Virus record (IMG/VR): IMGVR_UViG_3300050120_000230
Location: 124,001 to 188,000 of that record
Length of the DNA stretch: 64,000 nucleotides
Reading direction: 5' to 3' (one strand)
Shown here: piece after piece, positions 8,299-48,165 of the stretch
How the letters are laid out: every line of letters begins with the position of its first letter
Position numbering within the stretch: position 1 is the stretch's first letter
Translations under genes and position numbers: made by a program
Notes under the pieces: generated by a model
Told to the model about the DNA's origin: nothing
Seen by the model: only the letters and a program-made list of their open reading frames with translations
Database searches by the model: none

Positions 8299-8882
8299 TA
8301 GTAAAGCCCACCATGACCGCTAACGAGGCCGCCATTGAGAATGGTTGCACCGTAGGTTCGGAAGCCGCTCTGCGGCAGACTCATCAAGAAGATATTCGAT
8401 CCCGGTAGGACTGCTTCTCGAACCGTGGATGGTGTTCCACTGATTCGTTGCATGTAAAAAACACTGTTGGGTCGGTCTATGGCAATTCGATATGTGCCAG
8501 TTACCAAGGCTGATGAGTCACCAGCAGAAATCGTGGTAGCATCGCCAAACCAATTACCACTCCAATACCATGCTTTGTAATTCGCAGAAGTCGTGTAAGC
8601 AAACGATCCGACAGTATTGGACAAACCCAAAAACCCAACCGATGATGGTGAGGAATCTTGGCCAGATGCTAGAGTGATATCGATGTAATACTGGCCGCTA
8701 CTAGGAAGCACACCGCTGAATACACCGAAGGTATTTGTGTTGTTAGATGTGGTCGCCGAAAAGGTTGGACCCGGAGATGCCAAGGAGACAGTATCTCCCA
8801 ATGCCGTGATCCAATTCACCGACGACAGCAGGGTGAGCCCAGTAGGCTTCATTGCCCCGCGCATCGTCGGTAGAATAATCAA
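8298..8882 (-). CDS. Virion accessory beta-rich protein
   Basis: Shares the N-terminus M(L/I)ILP(S/T)MRG with its neighbour. Confidence 0.75.
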   Translation of the reverse strand: MIILPTMRGAMKPTGLTLLSSVNWITALGDTVSLASPGPTFSATTSNNTNTFGVFSGVLPSSGQYYIDITLASGQDSSPSSVGFLGLSNTVGSFAYTTSANYKAWYWSGNWFGDATTISAGDSSALVTGTYRIAIDRPNSVFYMQRISGTPSTVREAVLPGSNIFLMSLPQSGFRTYGATILNGGLVSGHGGLY

Positions 8883-10735
8883 CTCATGTCACCCGACAGG
8901 ACGTATTCGGCGACCGTTCCGTTGGCAGTACGAACCGTCACGGAGATTTCAGACCACTGCTTACGGCCTTTGGTGAAGCCGTCAGCCTGACGAATAGTCG
9001 TGCCGGTGTTGGCCACGAAAGTCGGAATGCCAGTTGCATTCGCCACGCGAACCAAGCAATTGAACCCGGCGAACAATGTGTTCGGCAGAATCAAAGAACC
9101 ATTGCCGCTGTTCCATTCAACGACTCGCCCGTGGTCAATAACGGTGAGCACACCATTTGCCGTGATGATCGTGTTGCTGATGATCGAAAGCGGGAACTGG
9201 TGAACGTGATCTTCACGCGATGCGACGTTCGCCACACCAACTGCGTTCGTCGTTCCCAAACCTAGTGGGCTGATGATCGAATAGACCGCATTGGCGCCAT
9301 TGACGCCCGCGTTGCCTTGCGGCCCCGTCGCTCCGGTCAGGCCGGTGTTGCCAATGGGACCTTGCAGACCAGTTGAACCCGTGTTGCCGGTCGCGCCAGT
9401 GGCACCTGTGTTGCCGATTGGACCCTGAGCACCGGTGTTGCCTTGTGGCCCCTGCGCTCCAACGAGGCTGGTGAGCCAGAATGTGACGTTGCCCGAAAAA
9501 CCTTGGGTGACTGCGACTTGATACGCGTTCGCTCCATCGACCCCTGCGTTACCTTGCGGGCCGGTTGATCCCGTAGCTCCGGTGTTGCCAATCGGGCCTT
9601 GGACGCCAGCGTTACCTTGGGCGCCTGTATTGCCGATGGGACCTTGAAGACCAGTCGAGCCGGTGTTGCCGATGGGACCTTGAATACCCGCATTGCCTTG
9701 AGCACCGGTGTTGCCAATGGGACCTTGGGGACCGGTGGCCCCCGCATTGCCTTGAGGACCGGGAACGGTAGAATCGGCGCCTTGCGGGCCAACCAGCGTC
9801 AACAGCCATGAAGTCGTATTGCCAACGAAACCGTCTTCGACCGCGATGACGTAAGCATTCGCGCCATCGACACCCGCATTGCCTTGCGAACCAGCAGGGC
9901 CAGTGTCGCCCGTAGTGCCAGTGTTTCCTTGAATGCCCGGTTCGCCTTGATCCCCTTGGGGACCGACGAGCGATGCGAGCCAAGTGGAAACGTTGCCAGA
10001 GAACGCCTCTTCGGTGACGGCGATGGTGTATGCGTTCGCGCCATCGACGCCTGCGTTACCTTGCGGTCCAACAGGGCCTAGATCGCCTTGCGGGCCGGGG
10101 ACCGTCGAGTCCGCGCCTTGCGGGCCTACGAGAGATGCCAGCCATGTTGAAACGTTGCCGGAGAAACTCTCTTCTTCGACCGCGATCACGTATGCGTTGG
10201 CGCCGTCTACGCCTGCGTTACCTTGTGGGCCGACATCGCCTTGAACGCCGGTGTTCCCCACGGGACCTTGCGAACCAGTCGTTCCTTGAACGCCCGGCGG
10301 ACCTTGGTCACCGGGCGGTCCTTGCGGCCCGGTGTTGCCCGTGATGCCTTGGCTACCGGTCTCGCCTTGAACGCCGGTGTTCCCAATGGGACCTTGCGGT
10401 CCTTGCGGACCATCCGGTCCCTGTGAACCGGTGTCACCCTTCGGACCAGTATTACCGGTCGGTCCACTGATGCCTTGCGGCCCGGCAGGAATAGTCCCGG
10501 CGATAATGCTCGTGTTGTCAGTGAGATGGAAAGTCAGCACACCCGTGTTGGCAGCCAGCACGATGCCGTCGATGCCAATGCCATGCGGGCCAAGCTCGCC
10601 TTGCGGACCCTGCGGACCAACGACCGTGGTCACGGTTTCGGCCGATGCAGATGCATTGGGTTCGATCAAAATGGCGTTGCTGACGAAGTAAACGTTTCCT
10701 TCAGCATCAATGCGGAGATCATCAATTGTAGGCAT
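8879..10735 (-). CDS. Collagen-like (Gly-X-Y) fibre protein
   Basis: Long GPQG/GNTG triplet runs with repeated GANAY...WL.SLVG cassettes; late promoter at 10762-10768. Confidence 0.9.
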   Translation of the reverse strand: MPTIDDLRIDAEGNVYFVSNAILIEPNASASAETVTTVVGPQGPQGELGPHGIGIDGIVLAANTGVLTFHLTDNTSIIAGTIPAGPQGISGPTGNTGPKGDTGSQGPDGPQGPQGPIGNTGVQGETGSQGITGNTGPQGPPGDQGPPGVQGTTGSQGPVGNTGVQGDVGPQGNAGVDGANAYVIAVEEESFSGNVSTWLASLVGPQGADSTVPGPQGDLGPVGPQGNAGVDGANAYTIAVTEEAFSGNVSTWLASLVGPQGDQGEPGIQGNTGTTGDTGPAGSQGNAGVDGANAYVIAVEDGFVGNTTSWLLTLVGPQGADSTVPGPQGNAGATGPQGPIGNTGAQGNAGIQGPIGNTGSTGLQGPIGNTGAQGNAGVQGPIGNTGATGSTGPQGNAGVDGANAYQVAVTQGFSGNVTFWLTSLVGAQGPQGNTGAQGPIGNTGATGATGNTGSTGLQGPIGNTGLTGATGPQGNAGVNGANAVYSIISPLGLGTTNAVGVANVASREDHVHQFPLSIISNTIITANGVLTVIDHGRVVEWNSGNGSLILPNTLFAGFNCLVRVANATGIPTFVANTGTTIRQADGFTKGRKQWSEISVTVRTANGTVAEYVLSGDMS

Positions 10736-10869
10736 TTCACACCGATCCAAGTAATATCGTGTATTTAGGGTCGGGTGCTATTTTGGTTGGTGGCTGTTTT
10801 TCCTCAATTTTTGGCTAAATACTCGACCATAACTCGGAAGCCGGTGGTTCCTATACTACCAAGCCATAA

Positions 10870-12465
<1,596 letters not shown>

Positions 12466-33940: not shown

Positions 33941-33997
33941 TATTCGTGGTGGGGATCGAACCCACGACCCAAGGCTCTACCGCTGAGCTACACGACC
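33941..33997 (-). ncRNA. Mini tRNA-like unit lacking the anticodon arm
   Basis: GGTCGTG-TAGCTCAGCGGTAGAGC-CTTGGGTC-GTGGGTTCGATCCCCAC-CACGAAT. Confidence 0.6.
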
Positions 33998-35688: not shown

Positions 35689-35692
35689 ATTG

Positions 35693-35782
35693 AGAATCAG
35701 GTGGGACTCGAACCCACGGGGACAAGCTTCGCTTGTTACGGGGGTAAAAACCCCGCCCTCTCGCCGCTGAGGTGACTGATCC
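35693..35782 (-). tRNA. Atypical tRNA-Lys(TTT) with long variable arm
   Basis: Loop TT-TTT-AC, V-arm ACAAGC-GAA-GCTTGT, U73, no CCA. Confidence 0.7.
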
Positions 35783-35822
35783 ATTTATTGAACATTCGTA
35801 GAGATATCAATACTATTGGTTA

Positions 35823-36416
35823 ATGTTTTGTGAATTTTGTTCTGACTTGATTTCTTCTCGATATGGTTCTGGTCGTTTTTGTTCTTCCAAAAGTGCCAGA
35901 GGTTTCAGCACCAAAGCTAGGCGCGCAGAGATCAATTCCAAGGTCAGCAAGAAATTATCGAATAGACCGTCTGGTCGAACGCTCGATTGCGTGACCATTT
36001 CTTTTCTGGCTGACAAACGACGTGAAAAACTCATGGAACTGCCATGGGAATCAATTGGCCTATACGCCAAAAAATCTCGCGTTCTGGGTGAACAAAATCA
36101 CCGGTGCAATGGATGCAACCTTGATGAATGGCGGGGCCAGCCGTTGGTTTTGGAAATCGAACATAAAGATGGCAATAACCAAAACAACGCCCGAGAAAAT
36201 CTCGAAGGCTTGTGTCCGAATTGCCATAGCCAAACGCCAACATGGCGTGGTCGTAACAAGGGTCGATCTAAATCAATCTCAGATCAAGAATTCATCGAAC
36301 ATCTGCAAGCTGCTAGCAGCATTCATCGCGCGCTGTTGAGCTTAGGTCTCTCAGCGAAGGGAACGAATTATAACCGTGCGAGAACTCTCATCCAATCACA
36401 TGGCATTTCTATGTGA
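35823..36416 (+). CDS. HNH homing endonuclease
   Basis: CNGC...LEIEHKDGNNQNN..ENL..LCPNCHSQT. Confidence 0.92.
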   Translation: MFCEFCSDLISSRYGSGRFCSSKSARGFSTKARRAEINSKVSKKLSNRPSGRTLDCVTISFLADKRREKLMELPWESIGLYAKKSRVLGEQNHRCNGCNLDEWRGQPLVLEIEHKDGNNQNNARENLEGLCPNCHSQTPTWRGRNKGRSKSISDQEFIEHLQAASSIHRALLSLGLSAKGTNYNRARTLIQSHGISM

Positions 36417-36492
36417 TGGTGAACCCCCTCGGATTTGAACCGAGAATCTCCTCCTTAAAAGGGAGTTGCATTAACCGTTATGCTAGGGGTCC
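36417..36492 (-). tRNA. tRNA-Lys(TTT)
   Basis: Loop CT-TTT-AA, CCA end. Confidence 0.9.
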
Positions 36493-36493
36493 G

Positions 36494-36634
36494 TTAGAAA
36501 GTAGCATTCAGAGGTGAATTCATCTCGGGATATTCTGTCGCGAGAACAGACCCTTCATATGTTCCCCAGCCAACGAAAGCCAGAACTAAAGCAATGATTG
36601 TGGTGCCGAGCGCGATTTTGAATGTCTTTTGCAT
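36494..36634 (-). CDS. Small membrane protein inside the tRNA operon
   Basis: MQKTFKIALGTTIIALVLAFVGWG..., 46 aa, not in the ORF track. Confidence 0.5.
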   Translation of the reverse strand: MQKTFKIALGTTIIALVLAFVGWGTYEGSVLATEYPEMNSPLNATF

Positions 36635-36678
36635 AGCAACAATTTATCTCTCTGAGATGTTGCGATGCAATATATTTG

Positions 36679-36762
36679 AGGGCGCGGTGGGACTCGAACC
36701 CACGGTGTGCTTACGCAAAAAGATTAAGAGTCTTCCCCCTTCGCCGCTCGGGACACGCGCCC
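36679..36762 (-). tRNA. Atypical tRNA-Lys(CTT) with long variable arm
   Basis: Loop CT-CTT-AA, V-arm TGC-GTAA-GCA, U73, no CCA. Confidence 0.75.
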
Positions 36763-36766
36763 ATGT

Positions 36767-36841
36767 TGGTGGATCGGGAGAGATTCGAACTCTCGACCTT
36801 GGGCTTAAGAGGCCCCTGCACTACCGCTGTGCTACCAATCC
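36767..36841 (-). tRNA. tRNA-Lys(CTT)
   Basis: Canonical cloverleaf, CCA end. Confidence 0.93.
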
Positions 36842-36845
36842 ATTG

Positions 36846-36933
36846 TAGTCCTGCTTGGATTCGAACCAAGATCACGCCCCGATCTGGGACTACGGATTAT
36901 AAATCCGACGCTCTGCCGTTGAGCTACAGGACC
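36846..36933 (-). tRNA. tRNA-Ile(TAT) with long variable arm
   Basis: Loop TT-TAT-AA, V-arm GTCCC-AGATC-GGGGC. Confidence 0.8.
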
Positions 36934-40199: not shown

Positions 40200-41291
40200 A
40201 TGCCTCTTGTTAACAACGTCCGCACTACACCCGGCTCGGACGTAAAATTCTTCGCGAACACGACGCCCGATGCAAACTCGGTTGCTAAGGTCGATGCTGT
40301 CCCGACTGTTGCTGGACCTCCGGGTCCGCAAGGTGTTGGCATTCGTTCTATTACGATTTCCGACAGCGATGACCTTCTTTTCACTCTAACTGACAACACC
40401 ACTATTGACGCAGGTACTCTGCCGCCCGGTCCCACTGGTCCAACTGGACCTACTGGTGTCACTGGGCCGCCGGGTCCGATTGGTAATATCGGCCCACAGG
40501 GTATCAAGGGCGACAAAGGCGACACGGGTGCAACCGGCACGGCTGGTATTCCGGGTGTTCAAGGTCCGAAGGGCGACAAAGGCGACACTGGTCTGACGGG
40601 TTCCGTTGGCCCGGAAGGCGATCACGTCACCAACGCGGTCATCAACGGCTCGAATCACATCATCTTCACGCTGAGCGACAACAGCACTATCGACGCTGGT
40701 CTGTTGCCTCCCGGCCCGACCGGCAACGCAGGCCCCACGGGTCCGCAGGGTCCTCAAGGCGTGGACGTGGCGAACGCGACGATCAACGGTTCGAACCATC
40801 TCATCTTCACGCTGTCGAACTCGGCTGTTATCGATGCCGGTCCTTTGCCGCCCGGCCCCACGGGTGGCATTGGTCCGACTGGACCGGCTGGTCCCGCTGG
40901 TCCGCAAGGTAACGCTTCGACGGTGGCTGGCCCGGCCGGACCCGCAGGCCCGAACTTCGAAACGGTCGTCAATCTCAACACCGCCACCGGAACGGTCACG
41001 CTCGATCTTGGCTCGAACAGTTTCTACAATCTGACCCTCACCGGCAACGTCACCATCGCGTTCTCCAACACGGCGCTGACGACTCGTTCCTATACGGCCG
41101 TCGTTTCCATCAAACAGAATTCCAGCGGTGCGGGAACGTTCACGGTGACGTGGCCGGGAACCTGCAACACGCCGGGCAACGTCGTCTATTCGCAATCGAC
41201 GGGTCTGGGCGCCACTGACCTCTACACCGTGTTCACGATCAACGGCGGGGCGAGCTACTTCCTCAGCCAAATTGGGCAACTGTATTCCTAA
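40200..41291 (+). CDS. Collagen-like fibre protein
   Basis: GPxG triplets, repeated A.INGSNH.IFTLS..IDAG.LP module, late promoter at 40167. Confidence 0.88.
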   Translation: MPLVNNVRTTPGSDVKFFANTTPDANSVAKVDAVPTVAGPPGPQGVGIRSITISDSDDLLFTLTDNTTIDAGTLPPGPTGPTGPTGVTGPPGPIGNIGPQGIKGDKGDTGATGTAGIPGVQGPKGDKGDTGLTGSVGPEGDHVTNAVINGSNHIIFTLSDNSTIDAGLLPPGPTGNAGPTGPQGPQGVDVANATINGSNHLIFTLSNSAVIDAGPLPPGPTGGIGPTGPAGPAGPQGNASTVAGPAGPAGPNFETVVNLNTATGTVTLDLGSNSFYNLTLTGNVTIAFSNTALTTRSYTAVVSIKQNSSGAGTFTVTWPGTCNTPGNVVYSQSTGLGATDLYTVFTINGGASYFLSQIGQLYS

Positions 41292-43290: not shown

Positions 43291-43375
43291 TGGGGAATGG
43301 TGTAATGGTAACATCCCTGACTTTGAATCAGGAGACGAGGAGTTTATGTAGGTTCGAGCCCTACTTCCCCAGCCA
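43291..43375 (+). tRNA. tRNA-Gln(TTG) with enlarged variable region
   Basis: Loop CT-TTG-AA, 15-nt variable region, CCA end. Confidence 0.85.
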
Positions 43376-46564: not shown

Positions 46565-46639
46565 GCTTGGGTAGCTCAGGGGTAGAGCAGTGGGCTGAAA
46601 ATCCGCGTGTCGTTGGTTCGATTCCAACTCCAAGCACCA
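46565..46639 (+). tRNA. tRNA-Phe(GAA)
   Basis: Loop CT-GAA-AA, CCA end. Confidence 0.93.
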
Positions 46640-46809: not shown

Positions 46810-47940
46810 ATGCCCATATTTAGAGAGGAACGGTCCCTTGGAGTTTCACGGCTAAGCCCAGAGCGCCTTAATCGGTATCTGGCACTGCAAGATTTGACCG
46901 ACGCATCGTCGGGCGAACACGCAATCAACCTCGTGCTGGACAAGCTGGTAACGGCAATTGAGCAATGGTCGGGCCTCAAGGCAGACATCGTTCGGTCCAC
47001 TCCTATCGTTTCCGTTCGGGACAACTACGACCGGCTCTACTATGAGCCGGACGCGGTCGCACGCTCTGCGCGCTATTCCCACTACGTTGACGATGAGCAC
47101 ATTCTTCGCACCCACACGACGGCGGCCATTCCCGGCCTGCTGACGGAGACCACGGCCGACCGGCTGATGGTTCTACCGGGTCTTGTCTATCGCCGCGATG
47201 TGATGGATCGGATGCATGTGGGAGAACCGCACCAAGTCGATCTCTGGGTCGCTAGGCGGTCAAGGCTCCGTCGTGATGATCTGTTGAAGATGATCGGCGC
47301 GGTTCTCAACGCGATCCTGCCCGGCTGCGAATACCGCTGCAACGAGACAATCCATCCATACACAGTAAATGGCTTGGAGGTCGAGGTTCGTGTGGACGAC
47401 CGGTGGATAGAGGTGCTCGAATGTGGGGAAATCCATCCGTGGCTTTTGAACGACAACGGCTTGCCTAGTCAGGAGTGGTCGGGCTTGGCGATGGGGCTGG
47501 GCCTAGACCGCCTTGTAATGCTCCTGAAGGGCATGGACGACATTCGGCTGCTTCGCAGCACGGATGCTCGTATTGCCCGCCAGATGGCTTCCCTGAGCCC
47601 CTACGAGGCTGTTTCGAACCAACCTATGACCAAGCGGGATATGTCGCTCACGGTGAGTGATCCTGACATCGAATTGATCGGAGATCGCATCCGGGTGGCG
47701 CTCGGTGATCGGGCTGACTGGTTGGAAGAGATCGTGGTCGTTTCGGCATCGAGTTGGGATGAAGTCCCGGCCGTGGCGAGGGAGCGTCTTGGGATGGCGC
47801 CTGAGCACACGAACCTGTTGCTGCGGCTCATCATGCGCTCACCGTCCGAGAGCATTCCGAAAGAGATCGCCAACGAAATCTACGACATAGTCTATGGCGA
47901 GCTTCACGAAGGATCGGCGGGGTATCAGCGTGTATCATAA
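46810..47940 (+). CDS. Single-chain PheRS-alpha-related class II ligase with C-terminal FDX-ACB-like domain
   Basis: LRTHTTA, motif 2 GLVYRRD..DR.H...PHQ.D, HPYT, W.EVLECG..HP, motif 3 GLAMGLGLDRL.ML..G..DIRLL, then RDMS domain. Confidence 0.88.
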   Translation: MPIFREERSLGVSRLSPERLNRYLALQDLTDASSGEHAINLVLDKLVTAIEQWSGLKADIVRSTPIVSVRDNYDRLYYEPDAVARSARYSHYVDDEHILRTHTTAAIPGLLTETTADRLMVLPGLVYRRDVMDRMHVGEPHQVDLWVARRSRLRRDDLLKMIGAVLNAILPGCEYRCNETIHPYTVNGLEVEVRVDDRWIEVLECGEIHPWLLNDNGLPSQEWSGLAMGLGLDRLVMLLKGMDDIRLLRSTDARIARQMASLSPYEAVSNQPMTKRDMSLTVSDPDIELIGDRIRVALGDRADWLEEIVVVSASSWDEVPAVARERLGMAPEHTNLLLRLIMRSPSESIPKEIANEIYDIVYGELHEGSAGYQRVS

Positions 47941-48090: not shown

Positions 48091-48165
48091 GTCGATGTAG
48101 CTTAGTGGCTAAAGCATCCGGTTGAAACCCGGAGATCGGCGGTTCGAACCCGCCCATCGGCACCA
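48091..48165 (+). tRNA. tRNA-Phe(GAA), variant
   Basis: Loop TT-GAA-AC, divergent body, CCA end. Confidence 0.9.

Follow-up and report, generated by a model that had tools for sequence, protein, structure and literature searches.

Phage lysine tRNAs with an additional variable arm form a conserved family in large phages

A giant phage carries, beside canonical lysine tRNAs, second tRNAs with the same two anticodons built on a long-variable-arm body, and the same design recurs in many large phages, where it may allow translation to continue when host defence enzymes cut normal tRNAs. The stretch of DNA analysed here (hereafter, the window) comprises 64,000 nucleotides, positions 124,001 to 188,000 of IMG/VR record IMGVR_UViG_3300050120_000230, a 415-kb phage record from peat with an estimated completeness of 72%. 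A first-pass annotation of the sequence had reported that both Lys anticodons occur twice, once in a canonical tRNA and once in a type II body with a paired variable arm, U73 and no encoded CCA, and that Ile(UAU) and Gln(UUG) also have enlarged variable regions. Our analysis confirmed this observation, with all coordinates agreeing to within 1 nt.

ARAGORN identified a tRNA-Lys(UUU) of 91 nt at 35692-35782(-) and a tRNA-Lys(CUU) of 85 nt at 36678-36762(-). The variable region of the former is 21 nt and contains a hairpin at 35722-35736(-) with a 6-bp stem and GAA loop, followed by a 4-nt CCCC spacer; that of the latter is 15 nt, with a 3-bp stem and GUAA tetraloop at 36708-36717(-), followed by a CACC spacer. 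Both genes have U73 followed by CA rather than CCA, and the 91-nt gene has a G2:U71 pair. Canonical twins were found at 36417-36492(-) (UUU, 76 nt) and 36767-36841(-) (CUU, 75 nt), both with A73 and CCA. An HNH homing-endonuclease-like ORF of 197 aa at 35823-36416(+) (PHROG 14736, E 3.5e-26; weak Pfam HNH_3 match) lies between the 91-nt Lys(UUU) and its canonical twin, and we regard it as context rather than as part of the tRNA design. tRNA-Ile(UAU) at 36845-36933(-) is 89 nt long and combines a canonical D arm with an inserted 5-bp variable arm (36876-36890), A73 and no CCA, whereas tRNA-Gln(UUG) at 43291-43375(+) is 85 nt long with an extended variable region of about 15 nt. A near-identical Gln body with an extended arm occurs in a 578-kb phage (labelled G004 here), and another in LR745206. 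The Rfam tRNA model scored both unusual Lys genes above its threshold (45 bits for the 91-nt gene and 47 bits for the 85-nt gene), although the 91-nt gene was missed in a window-wide run at the gathering threshold. RNAfold returned the five-arm cloverleaf as the minimum-energy fold of the 91-nt Lys, Ile(UAU) and Gln(UUG).

The window genes are not isolated cases. We collected 84 distinct V-extended Lys-anticodon tRNAs (53 UUU and 31 CUU), all within tRNA clusters, from about 80 IMG/VR contigs of 5-608 kb, from cultured phages of Caulobacter, Brevundimonas, Rhodobacter, Ruegeria, Mesorhizobium, Xanthomonas and Microcystis, and from three bacterial tRNA arrays. Lack of conservation in related phages had been named beforehand as grounds for rejecting the observation; instead, the design is widely conserved. 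In an alignment of 31 family members, 18 of 20 cloverleaf pairs show compensatory changes, which is far beyond chance, and the variable-arm stems covary under GNRA loops. The closest relative of the 91-nt Lys(UUU) (L007, 94 nt) keeps the arm stem through compensatory changes. A covariance model built from that alignment, which contains the Lys anticodon loop, scored members at 74 bits or more (77.5 bits for the 91-nt gene and 97.2 bits for the 85-nt gene, a typical family member), against 61 or less for Ser, Leu and canonical Lys tRNAs. One phage tRNA-Tyr reached 75.8 bits, so the cut-off does not cleanly exclude Tyr.

The anticodon loop C-U-Y-U-U-A-A, the T loop and G18-G19 are conserved across the family. 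The 85-nt gene has the loop CUCUUAA, whereas the 91-nt gene has UUUUUAC and therefore deviates at positions 32 and 38. In contrast to canonical bacterial tRNA-Lys, with its 4-5-nt variable loop, 4-bp D stem and A73, the window genes have a D arm of the class II type, and discriminator counts across the family were U 42, A 38, C 2 and G 1, compared with A73 in native alphaproteobacterial tRNA-Lys. The arm itself has its own layout of a 3-bp stem (19 of 26 Lys members), a GNRA loop and a 4-nt spacer on its 3′ side (21 of 26); the spacer is 1 nt in Ser (27 of 30, with stems mostly of 5-6 bp), 2 nt in Leu and 3 nt in Tyr. The C-A-Y-C spacer is conserved in 68 of 84 members, but the arm helix is not: 36 of 84 have an unpaired 11-12-nt A/C-rich loop.

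The same body also occurs with Asn, Thr and Cys anticodons. Asn(GUU) members have U1:A72 and G73, the Cys(GCA) member has U73, and Thr members have A73 or U73. With these anticodons the discriminator matches the anticodon's own synthetase, and in the Asn and Cys versions the discriminator and first pair switch to those of the cognate synthetase, which argues for cognate charging rather than mis-decoding. Extended arms were concentrated in tRNAs that read A-starting codons (Lys, Asn, Thr, Ile, Met). In six huge-phage genomes, 15 of 47 Lys, Asn and Thr tRNAs were 82 nt or longer, against 8 of 208 others (p=2e-7), and without Lys the comparison was 7 of 28 against 8 of 208 (p=5e-4). In 66 further loci, readers of A-starting codons other than Lys gave 17 of 166 against 5 of 330 (p=2e-5). 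The loci used for these statistics were found through Lys genes, and extended arms also occur in Gln(UUG), Trp, His and a CUA suppressor, which are not known nuclease targets. A canonical copy and a V-extended copy with the same anticodon recur in G000, G003 and G004 (our labels), Phosso and LR745206. In CcrRogue the two V-arm genes are the only Lys tRNAs in a cluster that holds the phage's whole tRNA set (PMC3556154).

We consider it somewhat more likely than not that the two unusual genes are working lysine tRNAs on a class II body resembling phage tRNA-Tyr and tRNA-Ser, belonging to a large family specific to phages and phage-like tRNA arrays. In this view, they would be transcribed within the tRNA cluster, processed and given CCA by the host enzyme; lysyl-tRNA synthetase would charge them with lysine because it reads mainly the anticodon U35-U36, which is what the family conserves; and they would decode AAA and AAG normally. 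As their D arm and variable region differ wholesale from host-type tRNA-Lys, host immune tRNases that dock on the tRNA body, such as PARIS AriB, PrrC and Schlafen-type nucleases, would cut them poorly, and the phage would keep a usable Lys decoder when canonical tRNA-Lys, whether host-encoded or its own twin, is destroyed. The anatomy, conservation, covariation, distribution and bias towards readers of A-starting codons are demonstrated by our analysis, whereas expression, lysine charging and escape from nucleases are inferred from sequence alone, the only sequencing run that holds the window being a DNA peat metagenome.

The isoacceptors with extended arms overlap published targets of anti-phage tRNases. 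AriB cuts tRNA-Lys(UUU), Thr(UGU), Asn(GUU) and Thr(CGU), all of which have versions on this body, and needs contacts in the D loop and elsewhere in the tRNA, and phage T5 escapes with its own Lys, Thr and Asn variants (PMC11464382, PMC12409363); RorSlfn5 cuts Lys(UUU) and Met(CAU), and PrrC cuts Lys (PMC13056530). As in T5, the tRNAs described here are phage-encoded, kept in clusters, and retain the anticodon of a target isoacceptor while differing from the host tRNA. However, the T5 variants keep the ordinary short-variable-loop body and escape through point changes at positions 16, 39 and 41, whereas here the whole body is of the long-arm class. Against this reading, half the family has U73, and the discriminator is a reported LysRS identity element (Ibba et al. 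1999, listed in PMC7590224). The AriB site U36-A-A-U-C is kept in the 85-nt Lys(CUU) and in many members, and comparison of positions 36-41 between V-arm and canonical twins showed no consistent pattern, the canonical twins also varying at positions 39-41, so that nothing assigns resistance to one body. The first-pass interpretation, which offered nuclease-resistant Lys tRNAs, decoys or deliberate mis-decoding of Lys codons, was partly supported: the first fits best, by inference from the overlap in targets, the second is not excluded and the third is disfavoured. Its premise that bacterial variable arms are normally limited to Leu, Ser, Tyr and Sec holds for cellular genomes (3 hits in 185,579 species, all in tRNA arrays), but not for large phages.

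Of the alternatives, the one that survives best, although we consider it unlikely, is that these are functional Lys tRNAs whose unusual body has no adaptive role: a Tyr- or Ser-like gene in a phage tRNA array was remoulded by anticodon mutation, is charged with Lys because LysRS reads the anticodon, and has simply spread through exchange of tRNA clusters. The GUA, GUU and YUU anticodons are each one substitution apart, the genes always sit in tRNA clusters, often next to homing endonucleases, and the arm helix is dispensable in many members. Similarity to bacterial tRNA-Tyr extends to a 3-bp arm stem, a G+C-rich 3-bp D stem with a long D loop, and 7/5 acceptor and T stems, but the anticodon is YUU rather than GUA, A73 is present in only about 45% of members (38 of 84), the spacer is longer and other phage tRNA-Tyr genes score only 35-60 bits with the family model. 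Scores of Tyr (35-76 bits) and Ser (53-61 bits; native Ser 60.9 bits) overlap, so the body could be assigned to neither. Against a neutral origin, both UUU and CUU versions are kept across very distant phages and hosts, the spacer is conserved, V-extended copies are repeatedly kept beside canonical copies with the same anticodon, and the strong bias to readers of A-starting codons is not expected from neutral drift.

Deliberate mis-decoding, in which SerRS (host, or the phage's own), TyrRS or LeuRS loads Ser, Tyr or Leu so that AAA and AAG are partly translated as another residue, is less likely still. In its favour, SerRS and LeuRS ignore the anticodon (PMC7609411), this phage encodes a SerRS with an extra stretch of about 85 aa at the C terminus, and some tRNA-Ser(CGA) genes in the same phages have U73, so U73 does not exclude serine charging and the near absence of G73 (1 of 84 members) is weak evidence in this setting. 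Precedents exist in allo-tRNAs (Mukai et al. 2017, reviewed in PMC7609411) and nematode nev-tRNAs (PMC3333845). Allo-tRNAs are likewise long-arm tRNAs with non-Ser, non-Leu anticodons, found in soil and peat metagenomes among other places, but they have 8/4 or 9/3 acceptor and T stems plus Ser or Ala identity elements and insert Ser or Ala whatever the anticodon, whereas ARAGORN and RNAalifold both gave a 7-bp acceptor stem and 5-bp T stem for the phage-borne family. Nev-tRNAs are class II tRNAs with anticodons of other amino acids, including Ile(UAU), conserved within one lineage, but they are eukaryotic, reported to be charged with leucine, unrelated in sequence and without a link to virus defence. 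Against mis-decoding, the arm geometry differs from Ser, Leu and Tyr, the 36 members without an arm helix lack what SerRS needs, A73, which LeuRS and TyrRS need, is missing in about half, identity elements track the anticodon in the Asn and Cys versions, and in phiCbK-type phages these are the only phage Lys tRNAs. Nothing suggests a changed genetic code: when stop-codon recoding linked to the CUA suppressor was examined, reading TAG as sense opened no more frame than reading TAA as sense, and TAG ends 83 long frames.

It is also unlikely that the molecules are non-translating decoys that occupy immune tRNases, or another tRNA-binding factor, through a Lys-type anticodon loop. Retention of the U36-A-A-U-C site in many members, and the combination here of U73 with a missing CCA, would be compatible with this role, but the acceptor and T stems, T loop and G18-G19 are kept in full with compensatory changes, as in translating tRNAs, about 9 in 10 of the members checked encode CCA (26 of the 31 aligned sequences), and they are the only Lys tRNAs in phiCbK-type sets. 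Pseudogenes or prediction artefacts, despite low Rfam scores, the one gene missed window-wide and the lack of encoded CCA, are refuted by conservation and covariation among 84 distinct homologues in cultured and uncultured phages and by the cloverleaf minimum-energy fold.

We also considered whether the arm is tolerated only by hosts with class I LysRS, as every cultured host was at first an alphaproteobacterium with LysRS1 (PMC1475646), and the Rhizobiaceae phages Atu_ph07 and Phosso, whose hosts have LysRS2, have only short Lys tRNAs. This was rejected because V-arm Lys tRNAs also occur in Xanthomonas phage XacN1 and Microcystis phage Mwe-JY26, and the same arm occurs on Asn and Thr tRNAs, which class II enzymes serve. 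A search for a phage-encoded partner enzyme found no LysRS of either class and no CCA-adding enzyme in the 415-kb record, although its incompleteness means that absence is not proven; SerRS, TrpRS, AspRS and GluRS are present.

All eight V-arm Ile(UAU) tRNAs, comprising the window gene and seven homologues in other phage contigs, show GAU in the arm loop (in the window, within the pentaloop AGAUC at 36881-36885), compared with 3 of 204 other V-arm tRNAs, and the stem covaries. A strict pattern search of IMG/VR for V-arm Ile(UAU) gave only chance hits, and the homologues were instead found inside the Lys loci. In an engineered system, a triplet displayed on the variable-arm loop mimics an anticodon and helps to recruit a synthetase, there fused to a second anticodon-binding domain (PMC7590224). 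A bolder and more doubtful possibility is that large phages keep a second, body-swapped set of tRNAs for A-starting codons in which the variable arm is a working module. In Lys, Thr and Asn it would make the tRNA unreadable to immune tRNases while leaving anticodon-based charging intact, a new anti-defence principle based on a change of structural class rather than point mutations. In Ile(UAU), the invariant GAU, the anticodon of the major tRNA-Ile, could act as a natural pseudo-anticodon that helps IleRS accept a tRNA whose real anticodon it reads poorly, although no evidence here shows that IleRS touches the arm.

Whereas textbook rules restrict bacterial long-arm tRNAs to Leu, Ser, Tyr and Sec, a conserved long-arm class in phages carries Lys anticodons, and also those of Asn, Thr, Cys and Ile. 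The genes are annotated in GenBank as tRNA-Lys, and in one record as tRNA-Ser, and literature searches for a prior description of V-arm Lys tRNAs in phages found none. Several of the phages can be grown in the laboratory, including phiCbK and CcrColossus on Caulobacter, XacN1 on Xanthomonas and, for Asn, a phiKZ-like phage on Pseudomonas. If the tRNAs are charged with lysine, they show how far LysRS tolerates a foreign body, and would offer ready-made orthogonal scaffolds. If they resist AriB, PrrC or Schlafen nucleases, they would explain why huge phages carry duplicate tRNAs with one anticodon, and would add a structural route of immune escape to the known route through point mutation.

The 415,409-bp IMG/VR virus record, of which the window covers bases 124001-188000, is estimated by CheckV to be 72% complete, and the only sequencing run found to hold the window was a peat metagenome. 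ARAGORN identified 31 tRNA genes in the window and 52 in the record, four of those in the window with Lys anticodons, all on the minus strand: a 91-nt tRNA-Lys(UUU) at 35692-35782, a 76-nt tRNA-Lys(UUU) at 36417-36492, an 85-nt tRNA-Lys(CUU) at 36678-36762 and a 75-nt tRNA-Lys(CUU) at 36767-36841. The 76-nt and 75-nt genes are ordinary, with a 5-nt variable loop, A73 and an encoded CCA. In contrast, the 91-nt and 85-nt genes have a class-II layout, with a G+C-rich 3-bp D stem, a long D loop and a paired variable arm, and both have U73 followed by CA rather than CCA. The arm of the 91-nt gene has 6 bp and a GAA loop (35722-35736), and that of the 85-nt gene has 3 bp and a GUAA loop (36708-36717). 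Ile(UAU) at 36845-36933 (89 nt) and Gln(UUG) at 43291-43375 (85 nt) also have extended variable regions. The first-pass annotation, which had reported long-arm Lys tRNAs beside canonical twins and enlarged variable regions in Ile and Gln tRNAs, was correct in both coordinates and description. The Rfam tRNA model scored the two unusual Lys genes at 47 and 45 bits, and RNAfold recovered the five-arm cloverleaf for the 91-nt Lys, Ile(UAU) and Gln(UUG). An ORF resembling an HNH homing endonuclease (35823-36416, plus strand; PHROG 14736, E 3.5e-26) is wedged between the 91-nt Lys(UUU) and its canonical twin on the opposite strand. A further 57-nt match to the Rfam tRNA model (33941-33997, minus strand; 37 bits) is too short for a full tRNA and was not called by ARAGORN.

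These genes belong to a family. BLAST searches against GenBank phages returned homologues that are mostly annotated as tRNA-Lys, although one record labels the gene tRNA-Ser and several leave it unannotated. Homologues occur in about 30 Caulobacter phages (the phiCbK group, CcrColossus and CcrPW), Brevundimonas phages, Rhodobacter phage RcXuper, Ruegeria and Roseobacter phages, Mesorhizobium phage Cp1R7A-A1, Xanthomonas phage XacN1, Microcystis phage Mwe-JY26 and the 635-kb uncultured phage LR745206. Two pattern scans of IMG/VR returned 15 and 77 contigs of 5 to 608 kb, and every locus held an ARAGORN-confirmed tRNA-Lys of 82-94 nt inside a tRNA cluster. The stricter pattern hit only 3 of 185,579 bacterial species genomes (a Methyloligellaceae MAG, Bradyrhizobium guangdongense and a Pseudomonadota MAG), in each case inside a phage-like tRNA array, and the native tRNA-Lys genes of the first two are canonical with A73. 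In total, 84 distinct sequences were collected, 53 with UUU and 31 with CUU anticodons.

In an alignment of 31 members, 18 of 20 cloverleaf pairs showed compensatory changes, as evidence of selection. A covariance model built from this alignment, for which E-values are only rough, scored members at 76 bits or more, and three independent members that were not in the alignment (from XacN1, the Microcystis phage and a Pseudomonas phiKZ-like phage, the last an Asn tRNA) scored 83, 77 and 75 bits. Ser, Leu and canonical Lys tRNAs scored 61 bits or less, but one phage tRNA-Tyr reached 75.8 bits. The 76-nt tRNA-Lys(UUU) of Sinorhizobium phage Phosso (positions 1501-1576 of the locus examined, L051) has the class-II-like D arm of the family but an ordinary 5-nt variable loop, and at 62 bits looks like an armless relative.

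The variable region of the family comes in two forms. In the hairpin form (48 of 84), one unpaired base is followed by a 3-bp stem and a loop that is mostly GNRA (GAAA in 14, GUAA in 6 and GCAA in 5), whereas the unpaired form (36 of 84) is an 11-12-nt A/C-rich loop with the consensus UAUACAAACAYC. Both forms end in C-A-Y-C in 68 of 84 members. Arm geometry, measured from ARAGORN structure strings on all tRNAs retrieved in this study, showed that the spacer between the arm and the T stem is 1 nt in Ser (27 of 30), 2 nt in Leu (23 of 38), 3 nt in Tyr (3 of 3) and 4 nt in the V-arm Lys tRNAs (21 of 26). The body therefore looks like a fourth geometry, nearest to Tyr. The discriminator is U in 42 members, A in 38, C in 2 and G in 1.

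The sequence evidence favours lysine as the attached amino acid. What the family conserves is the Lys-type anticodon loop and not the arm helix, on which SerRS depends. The geometry is unlike that of Ser and Leu, G73 is practically absent, and A73, which LeuRS and TyrRS need, is missing in half of the members. Furthermore, the same body occurs with other anticodons, and the acceptor end then switches to the cognate rule: Asn(GUU) versions in LR745206, the phiKZ-like phage phiHQ, the huge phages G003 (608 kb) and G004 (578 kb) and Phosso have U1:A72 and G73, a Cys(GCA) version has U73, and Thr(UGU) and Thr(CGU) versions have A73 or U73. In CcrRogue, the two V-arm genes are the only Lys tRNAs in an 11-kb cluster that holds the whole set of the phage; the phiCbK genome paper reports 23 tRNAs for Rogue without comment on their shape (PMC3556154). 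Mis-decoding, in which another amino acid is inserted at Lys codons, is unlikely but retains some support, and the identity rules for SerRS, LeuRS, TyrRS and LysRS applied here are those of model organisms rather than of these hosts. The phage encodes its own SerRS with a C-terminal extension, the discriminator is a LysRS identity element, and some phage tRNA-Ser(CGA) genes have U73. The latter include one of four clustered tRNA-Ser genes in this record (bases 380364-380730, outside the window), which have an unusual D arm with a G4/C4 stem, as well as Ser(CGA) genes of Caulobacter and Brevundimonas phages.

The large terminase (10873-12465, plus strand) is closest to those of Sinorhizobium phage Phosso (58%) and Agrobacterium phage Atu_ph07 (61%), and together with a collagen-repeat tail-fibre-like ORF (8879-10750, minus strand) and a second collagen-repeat ORF (40200-41291, plus strand) confirms that the window is phage DNA of the Rak2/Atu_ph07-like jumbo group. 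Outside the window, record bases 112426-113946, 329116-330180, 348451-351702 and 378802-379167 encode SerRS (506 aa, about 85 aa longer than the family model), TrpRS, adjacent AspRS and GluRS, and a HisRS-like fragment that lies between two tRNA-His genes of different identity types, one G-1/C73 and the other of the alphaproteobacterial type (G1:U72, A73). An alphaproteobacterial host is likely, on indirect evidence. Within the window, a 376-aa ORF (46810-47940, plus strand) between two tRNA-Phe(GAA) genes (46565-46639 and 48091-48165) matches NCBIfam NF051887, 'PheS-related mystery ligase SrmL' (E 6.6e-133), and matches true PheS only weakly. We initially considered that the extended arm is tolerated only where LysRS is of class I, which fitted all early data, but this was refuted by the Xanthomonas and Microcystis phages.

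To evaluate why a second body might be kept, three huge-phage genomes were surveyed completely (this record, G003 and G004) and three more in their tRNA-dense parts only (Phosso, Atu_ph07 and LR745206). Of 255 tRNAs outside Leu, Ser and Tyr, 23 were 82 nt or longer: 8 of 19 Lys, 4 of 12 Asn, 3 of 16 Thr, 3 of 18 Gln (all three Gln(UUG)), 2 of 7 CUA suppressors, and one each of Ile(UAU), Cys and Arg(UCU). Lys, Asn and Thr together gave 15 of 47 against 8 of 208 for the rest (Fisher p=2e-7). As some of these genomes were found through Lys genes, Lys has to be left out, and Asn and Thr alone still gave 7 of 28 against 8 of 208 (p=5e-4). In 66 further IMG/VR loci, themselves found through Lys genes and again leaving Lys out, readers of A-starting codons gave 17 of 166 against 5 of 330 (p=2e-5), led by Ile(UAU) with 6 of 8 and followed by Met(CAU), Thr(UGU) and Asn(GUU). 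Most V-extended copies sit in genomes that also hold a canonical-length copy with the same anticodon, and the twin arrangement seen in this window is therefore a general design. An 88-nt CUA suppressor on the same long-arm body lies (with G73 and 72 bits with the family model) in a cluster of odd tRNA-like genes outside the window (record bases 373038-373472), alongside two Rfam tRNA hits of 107-110 nt with inserts of about 35 nt in the anticodon loop, which the intron mode of ARAGORN reads as AUU and UUA; the record shows no sign of TAG recoding.

The Ile(UAU) gene differs in having a canonical body with an inserted 5-bp arm (36876-36890, minus strand) and a 5-nt spacer. Seven homologues of 90-94 nt were found in other phage contigs, and all eight tRNAs have GAU in the arm loop (AGAUC, AGAUU, AGAUA, AGAUG, UGAUA, UAGAUGU; 36881-36885 in the window), while the stem covaries. 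Only 3 of 204 other V-arm tRNAs have GAU at this position. GAU is the anticodon of the major tRNA-Ile, and an engineered pseudo-anticodon on the variable arm has been shown to aid charging (PMC7590224), suggesting that this loop may be a pseudo-anticodon, although any reading of it by IleRS or another factor is conjectural.

The bias in isoacceptors overlaps with published nuclease targets. The PARIS effector AriB cleaves E. coli tRNA-Lys(UUU), Thr(UGU), Asn(GUU) and Thr(CGU) between positions 40 and 41 and needs base-specific contacts in the D loop (U16-U17) and elsewhere in the body, and phage T5 needs its own Lys, Thr and Asn variants to escape (PMC12409363; PMC11464382). A bacterial Schlafen cuts tRNA-Lys(UUU) and Met(CAU), and PrrC cuts tRNA-Lys (PMC13056530). 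The record also encodes an Rnl2-type RNA ligase, which is common in phages that face anticodon nucleases. The anatomy, conservation and distribution of these tRNAs are shown by the sequences themselves, whereas expression, charging with lysine and any escape from nucleases are inferred. The 36-41 site varies in both bodies without a pattern, and extended arms also occur on tRNAs that are not known targets. Among these, V-extended Gln(UUG) recurs in three huge phages (43291-43375, plus strand, in the window; 516221 in G004; 407961 in LR745206), with nearly the same body in G004 as in the window; Gln(UUG) was an uncleaved control for AriB (PMC12409363), so another pressure may act on it. The interpretation in the first-pass annotation, which had proposed nuclease-resistant Lys tRNAs, decoys or deliberate mis-decoding, is partly supported.

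We found no paper that describes this family. It is not an allo-tRNA, as it has 7/5 stems rather than 8/4 or 9/3 and lacks G73; it is not a nev-tRNA, which is eukaryotic and Leu-charged; and it is not a regular tRNA-Tyr or tRNA-Ser. A wholesale change of the D arm and variable region, with the anticodon kept, is a plausible way to lose the contacts on which such nucleases depend. In this view, the family would work most like the T5 anti-PARIS tRNAs, but through a change of structural class instead of point changes.
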